A DNA stretch of 64,000 bases, from contig CAJFCJ010000007.1 of the NCBI GenBank assembly GCA_904063045.1, forward strand, positions 2,611,404 through 2,675,403, given 5' to 3'. The notes under the pieces are model-generated. The model ran no database searches, was not told the DNA's origin, and saw nothing but the letters and a program-made list of their open reading frames with translations. Source of the DNA: Dimorphilus gyrociliatus. Lineage: Eukaryota > Animalia > Annelida. The position numbers were made by a program, and so were the translations under genes. Below are positions 37,198 to 39,177 of the stretch, piece after piece (the first letter of the stretch is position 1; each line of letters starts with the position of its first letter).

Positions 37198-39177
37198 TTA
37201 TTTGAAAAGAATCATTCTCTTGGCACATTTCTTTCCAACGTGACGGGCGTATTCCTTTATATCATCTGTATTATTGCTTTGTCTATAGGTTTCGAATGCG
37301 ATAAGTCTTTTCGATCGATATATTAATATTTCGCTGAAATCGGTTGTAGCATCTTCATCTCGATCTGTAAAAAAAATTTTTTACTTGTTTGTTCATTAAG
37401 CTTAAGATAAATTAATAGATTAAATATATGAACATACCTTCTTTATTTGAGAATCTGCTATACTTTGACTGATCTAGTTTACGTTTGCATTCTTCAATTG
37501 GATGCCAGCTATAAGATTCTGGACAGAGTAAGTATGATGGATGGTATTGGCCTTTGTATCTCATTTTTGGACAGGAGTGAATATAGAATCCCATATAATA
37601 GAATTCAATGTTGCTAGCTTTCGCATGTAGTTCTCTGACGAATGATATTTCTCTAAAATAACGACATAATTACGAATGTGTGAGACTTTAATGGAGTTAG
37701 TTAGTAATCACCTTAACGCTGAATAAGTACCAAGCGTTAAAAAGTTAAACTCTGGATCATAAAATAAGTACACAGATGAAACGCATTTAGGTAAAATATC
37801 AATTACGCCAACTGCAATTAATCTATCATCTAGCCAATATTGTTGATGGAAAGAACCATAAGTTACTTCTCCGCTTACTTCTGGCTGTTTGAAGGAGAGC
37901 GTCAATAAAATTTCTTTTATAAGTTGTTCTAGAAAAGTGATTATTTTCATTATTTAGACATTATATACATATATAATGCATTATTTTGGGCCTAATCCGT
38001 CAGTTTAATATCTTACTAGTAAAGGACTCTCCACCAAAAAACCTTCAAATGCGTCTCTGTCACATTCACTAGGAGTATCTTTGTGAATTGTCATTTGATA
38101 TTTTTCAAAGAGAGAATGACTTAATTCCAAATCGTTTTCAGAGAGATCAGGGCAACTTATCAACTTAATCTGAATAAATAAGACAAAGATTACTGACCTT
38201 CAGCGGAGAATTTATTAGAAATCTTGTGAATTGACTTCTAGAAGGCTTGCTAGGCGGATCATTGTGTATCGTGGTTTGATATTTAAAATAAATTTCATAG
38301 CTTTTTTCAAATGTTCGCTTAAATTCTTCACTTCCCATGTTCGATTGAACAAGAACAATCTAGATTTATCAGATCAGCCCAACAGCTCATATAGAAAGCG
38401 ATATATATTAAAAATCTTACTTTAAGATTATGCTTTGGATTTGGTGAGATATCATTTAACAACTCTTCTAAACTTTTGGCTTGATTCTTTTTTGCTTTTT
38501 CGAATTTAGTGCTTGCTGCAGACTGATATAGAAAATAATTACATTAGTTATATCCTTAAGTCCAAAAAATATGAAATATTAACAGCTTTCTTAGCTAATT
38601 TCTCTTCTTTTCTTCTTTCTTTTGCTTTCCTACAAGGGGGTTTCGATGGATCAGGTCCCGCACCTGGTTTAGGGGTAGATTTGAAGCGCTTTGCTTCATC
38701 CTGCTTCTGGCCATTCGATGCTTTTACACCTGAATTTTCTTCGAATGATTTTCCAATTTCTCCAGTATTCAGAAATTTATTGAATGATTTGATCGTTTTT
38801 CGTTGGCCTTTGCTAATTGAAAAATCCAAAGACTGTTGTTTTATAGTATAGCTTGGACAGCATTGCTTGTCAAGAATTGGTTTGTAACAATAAGTTCCAC
38901 TTCTGAAAGATGAAAGAAACATAAAATCCTTGACTTTTGTAAGAAAAATAATATAATCAAACCTTCTCCATCCTCTATCAATCAGATCCTGATAATCCTG
39001 AACAGACATATCATAAGCAGACATGCCTATAAATTTTTTTTTTTACAATTAATATGTTTTACTTTGAAGTAAACAGCTAATATTCTTACCATAGGAACTA
39101 TTAGAAGCTCCTTTACAATAACCACAACTATAATCTGCGTGTGATGAATGATATTGAACTACTGTTCTGTTGTTCAT
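37198..39177 (-). CDS. ATE1: Arginyl-tRNA--protein transferase 1, containing a duplicated internal exon pair
   Basis: Seen: [23 protein letters not shown]...CCPSYTI, KYQxTIHx[57 protein letters not shown]. Confidence 0.97.
38017..38169 (-). other. ATE1: ATE1 alternative exon B (153 nt, phase 0-0)
   Basis: Seen: ttattcag|ATT...CTA|gtaaga, encoding [51 protein letters not shown]. Confidence 0.85.
38198..38359 (-). other. ATE1: ATE1 alternative exon A (162 nt, phase 0-0)
   Basis: Seen: ctag|ATT...AAG|gtcagt, encoding [54 protein letters not shown]. Confidence 0.88.

Follow-up and report, generated by a model that had tools for sequence, protein, structure and literature searches.

A probably mutually exclusive exon pair separated by a 28-nt spacer in the ATE1 gene of the annelid Dimorphilus gyrociliatus

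Results

The ATE1 locus and its tandem exons

In the 64,000-nt stretch of Dimorphilus gyrociliatus DNA analysed here (the window), the ATE1 gene lies on the minus strand with a coding region of 37198..39177, and comprises nine exons when both members of an alternative pair, exons A and B, are counted (Table 1). We ran a Pfam scan exon by exon on the gene model, which placed ATE_N in E3 (E 1.5e-8) and ATE_C in exons A and B, in E6 (E 6.6e-18) and in E7 (E 8.1e-12). The presence of ATE_N and ATE_C in one gene, along with matches to the solved human and yeast ATE1, identified it as a gene for an arginyl-tRNA-protein transferase. By exon-length arithmetic, the isoforms with A or B have 429 or 426 codons, respectively. 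The poly(A) site lies near 37040, at the poly-T loose end of a contig from RNA run X2 (see below). Introns in the vicinity of A and B measure 63, 60, 61, 61, 59 and 73 nt in the gene model, and the intron removed between A and E6 in the A isoform is 313 nt long, consisting of the spacer, exon B and the 132-nt intron B-E6.

The 5' leader of ATE1 contains a 722-nt intron (junction 39202/39925). The first non-coding exon of ATE1 therefore lies inside, and antisense to, a gene on the plus strand that has three introns of its own. Downstream of ATE1, a gene of the CRAL-TRIO family is found both in the window and in the contig of a syntenic relative (L002), indicating that the local gene order is conserved.

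Table 1. Positions of ATE1 features and neighbouring genes in the window, and of the spacer between the two exon copies in other genomes.
Feature	Position	Strand	Remarks
CRAL-TRIO family gene, window	about 36000-36530	-	downstream of ATE1
CRAL-TRIO family gene, relative	L002:4931-5509		downstream of ATE1
E8	37364-37198	-	167 nt, includes stop
E7	37652-37438	-	215 nt
E6, constant downstream exon	37884-37712	-	173 nt; core of ATE_C
Intron B-E6	37885..38016	-	132 nt; RNA-contig junction
Exon B, alternative, copy-2 / 7b type	38169-38017	-	153 nt, 51 codons; PSEC motif
A-B spacer	38197-38170	-	28 nt, GT..AG
Exon A, alternative, copy-1 / 7a type	38359-38198	-	162 nt, 54 codons; PSKP motif
Intron 4, 5' of exon A	38360..38420	-	61 nt; RNA-contig junction, CT..AC on plus strand
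16-nt element in intron 4	38371-38386	-	16/16 identical in L002
E4, constant upstream exon	38522-38421	-	102 nt, phase 0-0; donor joined to A or B
E3	38902-38584	-	319 nt
E2	39026-38963	-	64 nt
E1	39177-39090	-	88 nt
ATE1 5' leader intron	39203-39924	-	722 nt
Plus-strand gene	39672-40759	+	introns 39784-39947, 40021-40112, 40246-40300
Spacer, syntenic relative	L002:2979-3006		28 nt
Spacer, distant contig	L001:2235-2264		30 nt
Spacer, contig L011	L011:307-339		33 nt
Spacer, contig L012	L012:958-999		about 42 nt
Spacer, Helobdella robusta (leech)	L009:3322-3365		44 nt
Copy 2, Helobdella robusta	L009:3366-3530		44 nt after copy 1
Spacer, Polyplax (louse)			about 165 nt
Spacer, Antedon (crinoid)			about 460 nt
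Spacer, Halocaridina (shrimp)			about 835 nt
Spacer, Homalodisca			about 2760 nt
Spacer, Uloborus (spider)			about 4100 nt

An earlier note, made from the sequence alone, had described A and B as homologous exons of phase 0-0 with canonical splice sites around a 28-nt spacer. Re-reading of the sequence returned the same coordinates for both exons and the same GT..AG spacer. Each exon is preceded by a YAG acceptor and followed by a GT donor, and both the gene model and exon-length arithmetic place A and B in phase 0-0. BLASTP aligned the two with 18/40 identities (45%, E 2e-12). They match the same positions of the Pfam ATE_C profile (2-35), and align to residues 277/288-325 of human ATE1-2, the match of B to human ATE1 being weaker than that of A (27 vs 43 bits). 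A and B thus show the feature of tandem duplication, namely adjacent homologous exons of the same phase and of similar length (162 vs 153 nt). Retention of the spacer leads to a stop, as had been noted, and does so after 10 codons. The additional claim that the AG dinucleotides checked within exon B are out of frame held for most AGs of the exon, with two exceptions that are in frame: the AG at 38164, use of which would make an intron of 34 nt, and that at 38029, which leaves 4 codons of the exon. Of these two, only the AG at 38029 lies far enough downstream to be spliced.

Either/or use of the two exons in RNA

The stretch was present in two public runs, X1 and X2, both as assembled contigs, which we aligned to 36000-41000. 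X1, which comes from another study than X2, is a coral metatranscriptome. The X2 contigs show splicing and have a poly(A) end at 37040, which indicates that X2 is a transcriptome. The four junctions that the earlier note had named for two arginyltransferase isoforms made by either/or use were all present in X2 contigs, at exactly the coordinates predicted, namely E4-A (38359/38421), E4-B (38169/38421), A-E6 (37884/38198) and B-E6 (37884/38017). In X1, a single contig of 237 nt contained 23 nt of E4, the whole of A and 52 nt of E6, and the junctions of exon B came from one run only (X2). The contig depths for the junctions of A and of B in X2 were of the same order (180-300). Both exons are therefore spliced to both constant flanks.

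Removal of the 28-nt spacer could, in principle, give a protein of 480 residues in which A is followed by B. The lengths of both exons are divisible by 3, the spacer begins with GT and ends with AG, and its loss would leave the frame intact. Introns of 15-30 nt are spliced in some eukaryotes, and gene predictors in other animals often fuse the two copies. However, an A-B junction (38169/38198, spacer removed) was not found among the listed contig junctions of X1 and X2, even though X2 is the run in which the four either/or junctions reach the depths given above, and all introns observed here are at least 55 nt long. The junctions reported included some whose shorter side measured 27-30 nt, so that a contig with a short A-B junction would have been listed, but contigs drop rare variants and a minor A-B spliced product could escape such data. 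The gene models that fuse the copies in other species lack support, and in the crinoid the two copies are annotated by NCBI as alternative isoforms (named X1 and X2, like the runs). We therefore consider it very improbable that the tandem protein is a regular product. A double skip joining E4 to E6 (37884/38421) was likewise absent from the listed contig junctions of X1 and X2.

The X2 contig over exon A stops exactly at the last base of A (38198), with the A-E6 junction carried by a separate contig. Such a break at the 3' end of A points to a second continuation beyond the donor of A, which is probably RNA that retains the 28-nt spacer.

Length of the spacer and splice signals within it

The spacer had been estimated at about half the length of neighbouring introns, and the RNA contigs agreed with this. 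The 10 other introns in the same 5 kb measured 55, 57, 59, 60, 61, 63, 73, 92, 164 and 722 nt, so that the shortest of them is 55 nt against the 28 nt of the spacer. For D. gyrociliatus, a median intron length of 66 bp has been published (PMC7854359). A minimal-intron scan of the window that used the sequence only gave a peak at 50-64 nt, but was too noisy and was set aside as evidence; the candidates of 25-29 nt that we inspected from it were either antisense to coding sequence or inside a longer intron.

Within the spacer, the donor of exon A is followed by TAAT at +6 to +9 (38192-38189), and then by a tract rich in pyrimidines that extends to the AG. Position 38190, the A at +8, is 8 nt from the donor of exon A and 20 nt before the acceptor of exon B, the latter being a normal branch-to-acceptor distance. 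The spacer of the relative L002 has TAAC where the window has TAAT. A CTGAA inside the end of exon A had earlier been put forward as the branch site for exon B, but this is less likely than the TAAT/TAAC of the spacer, which is present in the relative as well.

Conservation and selection in a syntenic relative

The spacer of L002 is exactly 28 nt long and identical at 23/28 positions (82%), whereas both flanking introns differ in length between the window and L002. Intron 4 measures 61 vs 65 nt (72% identical) and intron B-E6 132 vs 175 nt (55% identical). Amino-acid identity to L002 is 87% for exon A and 67% for exon B. The dN/dS values against L002 are 0.11 for A and 0.20 for B (dS 0.6-1.0), and 0.04 for E6, with dS of 0.6-1.2 over all three exons, and indicate that exons A and B are both under purifying selection.

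One of the exons, most likely B, could be a decaying duplicate without function that is spliced in as noise. Exon B has changed faster than A, its match to human ATE1 is the weaker one, its junctions come from one run only, and its counterpart in the leech sits on a very long branch. On the other hand, B is intact and in frame with the dN/dS given above, and retains the copy-2 motifs that are common to vertebrates, echinoderms and arthropods. Contig depths for the B junctions are also in the same range as for A, and we find decay of B hardly credible. A and B are a real, expressed and conserved pair of exons and, in all likelihood, mutually exclusive.

Intron 4 contains a 16-nt element, GCTGTTGGGCTGATCT, that is identical in L002 at every position. 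It holds a G-run and a branch-like CTGAT motif 14 nt before exon A, and could be the branch region of exon A or a regulator site for the choice between A and B.

The exclusive use of A and B may have a cause other than the short spacer, which would then be a mere by-product of compact introns, while RNA pairing, regulatory proteins or decay of wrong products decide the outcome, as they do in mammals and presumably in arthropods. In arthropods and the crinoid, the two exons are separated by spacers of ordinary length or longer (Table 1), and mammalian Ate1 relies on competing RNA structures (PMC7797038). In the window, intron 4 and intron B-E6 can form a GC-rich helix of roughly 13 bp (-26 kcal/mol, with 4.3% of shuffles as good), which is part of the minimum-energy fold, and the perfect conservation of the 16-nt element would also fit such regulation. 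This helix is, however, missing in L002, where the best duplex (-15.7 kcal/mol) is worse than the shuffle mean (-17.8), and the fold of the region as a whole is no more stable than that of shuffled sequence (z -0.03). A spacer of 28 nt is too small for a docking site, and the duplex of intron 4 with the spacer reaches only -9.5 kcal/mol. In addition, a helix that brackets A and B would favour double skipping, which the contigs do not contain, and the length of the spacer is kept in L002 while both flanking introns have changed theirs. Taken together, these results make the by-product reading unlikely.

As the pairing of intron 4 with intron B-E6 is marginal in the window and absent from L002, an RNA-duplex switch was rejected as the main device. 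A search of the window and L002 for conserved alternative-pairing elements of the docking/selector type, as in competing RNA structures, did not find any.

The spacer in other genomes

Short spacers between the two copies were also found on other contigs and in the leech Helobdella robusta (Table 1), and further read-through ORFs on several contigs imply in-frame spacers of roughly 42-54 nt. Finding spacers from ORFs is biased toward those that are short and free of stops. As read from these genomes, a tiny spacer is conserved in the lineage of the window and recurs in other invertebrates, but is not universal for ATE1.

The annotated protein of Helobdella uses copy 1 and skips copy 2, which is unannotated. 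This second copy is strongly diverged and has the longest branch in the tree described below, and it may be fast-evolving or decaying. Two other contigs (L013 and L014) carry intronless, single-copy ATE1 genes and are therefore uninformative on spacers. Their segment mixes the marks of both copies, with an E-C motif and (Q/H)FTRFL.

Origin of the exon pair

We searched a profile of A and B against 1.84 billion proteins and obtained 857 matches. Two tandem matches were present in 30 of the best 150 of these, and the named proteins with two matches came from the insects Homalodisca, Blattella, Diploptera and Polyplax, and from a shrimp, a spider, a tick, birds, a bat and a nematode. Copy 1 is marked by (V/I)Y before KYQ and a K-P or K-C motif, and copy 2 by L-F before KYQ and an (E/D)-C motif. 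Exon A of the window carries the marks of copy 1 and exon B those of copy 2, in the same genomic order as elsewhere.

A maximum-likelihood tree was computed from 52 copies and 40 columns, covering vertebrates, an echinoderm, arthropods, annelids and a nematode. In this tree a branch with support 88/85 split 25 copy-1 rows from 25 copy-2 rows, the copy 1 of the nematode being the sole copy-1 row outside the copy-1 side. The copy label changed 2 times on the tree vs 17.6 times in shuffles. An AU test of window A and B as sisters, as expected from a lineage-specific duplication, left that arrangement unrejected on these 40 columns (p 0.28).

The earlier note had linked the pair to exons 7a/7b of mammalian Ate1. 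The link is supported in that A and B cover the residues of human exon 7b, and that they fall with copy 1 and copy 2 of other bilaterians, respectively. Published work places the human ATE1 event at the level of Bilateria, with fly Ate1 and worm ate-1 among the genes listed (PMC9741552), and the copy-wise grouping of A and B fits this date. Our data do not agree with the statement that a homologue of 7b is absent in invertebrates (PMC7797038). From motifs, order and tree, A and B are probably orthologous to vertebrate 7a/7b.

The boundaries of the alternative exons differ among animals. In vertebrates and the crinoid (P0011, P0018, P0091/P0172) they are shorter at their ends by ~10 codons than the exons of the annelid and of arthropods. 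The extra stretch of the worm and arthropod exons (F..FL..SPL) belongs to the next constant exon in deuterostomes and to the alternative exon in protostomes, and the position of the downstream intron differs between the two groups.

In the predicted proteins P0029/P0167 (Steinernema glaseri) and P0030, the two matches are identical or nearly so, at a distance of 65-79 residues from each other. This double match, which reaches across part of the next exon, has the look of a recent duplication of larger size or of an artefact of the gene model or assembly, and not of the old pair.

Discussion

A steric model for exclusion

We consider it likely that A and B are the annelid representatives of the bilaterian ATE1 7a/7b pair, used either/or, with double inclusion blocked physically by the 28-nt spacer. 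A and B each supply about 50 residues at the start of the ATE_C (GNAT) domain. In this model, one of them would be present per mRNA, and the mRNAs with A or B would give arginyltransferase isoforms of 429 and 426 residues, which may differ in function. The branch site of exon B (likely the TAAT at +6 to +9) and its pyrimidine tract would fill the spacer beside the donor of A, so that recognition of both on one pre-mRNA would clash. The spacer is far below the length of any intron that this animal was seen to splice, and is presumably not excisable. If both exons were kept with the spacer unspliced, the reading frame would meet a stop after 10 codons, and the retained form would be expected to decay.

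The earlier note had proposed a short intron as the exclusion device. This fits with a spacer half the length of the shortest other intron, with its length being kept in L002, and with the precedent of C. elegans described below. The conserved, very short spacer most likely acts as a steric lock. Steric hindrance accounts for the absence of double inclusion; it does not account for the absence of double skipping, nor for the choice between A and B, on which the 16-nt element of intron 4 may bear. In four arthropods and a crinoid the pair persists with 165-4100 nt between the exons, which implies that other mechanisms of exclusion exist, and these could act here too.

A broader reading, which we offer tentatively and regard as possible at best, is that the tiny spacer is an old steric lock kept by selection in annelids and other invertebrates with small introns, while vertebrates use RNA helices and arthropods something else, and that the overlap of the exon B branch site with the exon A donor is the switch point. 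If true, the mechanism of exclusion would have turned over while the either/or pair was kept for > 500 million years.

Both the ATE1 exon pair and a steric mechanism of exclusion are already known, and the present case adds no new mechanism or principle. It does show that the ATE1 exon pair is alive and expressed in an annelid. Mammalian ATE1 isoforms that differ in the A/B segment behave differently. The region from E4 to E6, about 550 nt in all, is a compact natural test bed for how short an intron has to be to forbid splicing, and could show how one conserved either/or choice is enforced differently across animals.

Comparison with known systems

Exons 2 and 3 of alpha-tropomyosin are reportedly kept apart by steric hindrance in mammals, in work ascribed to Smith and Nadal-Ginard in 1989; the general mechanism is cited in PMC4165533. 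As proposed here for A and B, the branch point of the downstream exon is too close to the upstream donor for the spliceosome to assemble. In alpha-tropomyosin, however, the branch point is displaced within an intron of normal length, whereas in ATE1 the whole intron between A and B is 28 nt long.

Five clusters of C. elegans, egl-15 5B/5A (14 nt), let-2 9/10 (30 nt), bet-2, gly-5 and gly-6 (Kuroyanagi et al. 2014, PMC4165533), have a similar layout. The intervening introns of 14-30 nt between their mutually exclusive exons of 3n length are never excised, the minimal intron being ~40 nt, and steric interference is the accepted explanation for all five (PMC4165533). Like A and B, these are homologous 3n exons with an intervening intron below the minimal intron size, taken here as the shortest of the 10 others seen. 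They differ in that the genes and the phylum are other ones, and that exclusivity was tested by RT-PCR, including in NMD mutants, as against the contig-level RNA used here.

Exons 7a/7b of mammalian Ate1 (Kalinina et al. 2021, PMC7797038) are the counterpart in the same gene and the same segment, the start of ATE_C (human residues ~277-325). The structure of human ATE1-2 represents the 1b7b isoform and places residues of exon 7b on the dimer interface (PMC11283454). In mammals and the worm alike, the copy of KP type precedes that of EC type, the two are used either/or, and their origin is probably shared. The mammalian exons are 129 nt long and far apart, whereas A and B measure 162 and 153 nt and are 28 nt apart. 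Exclusivity in mammals is achieved by competing intronic RNA helices (R1-R5), for which the worm spacer offers no room for a docking site.
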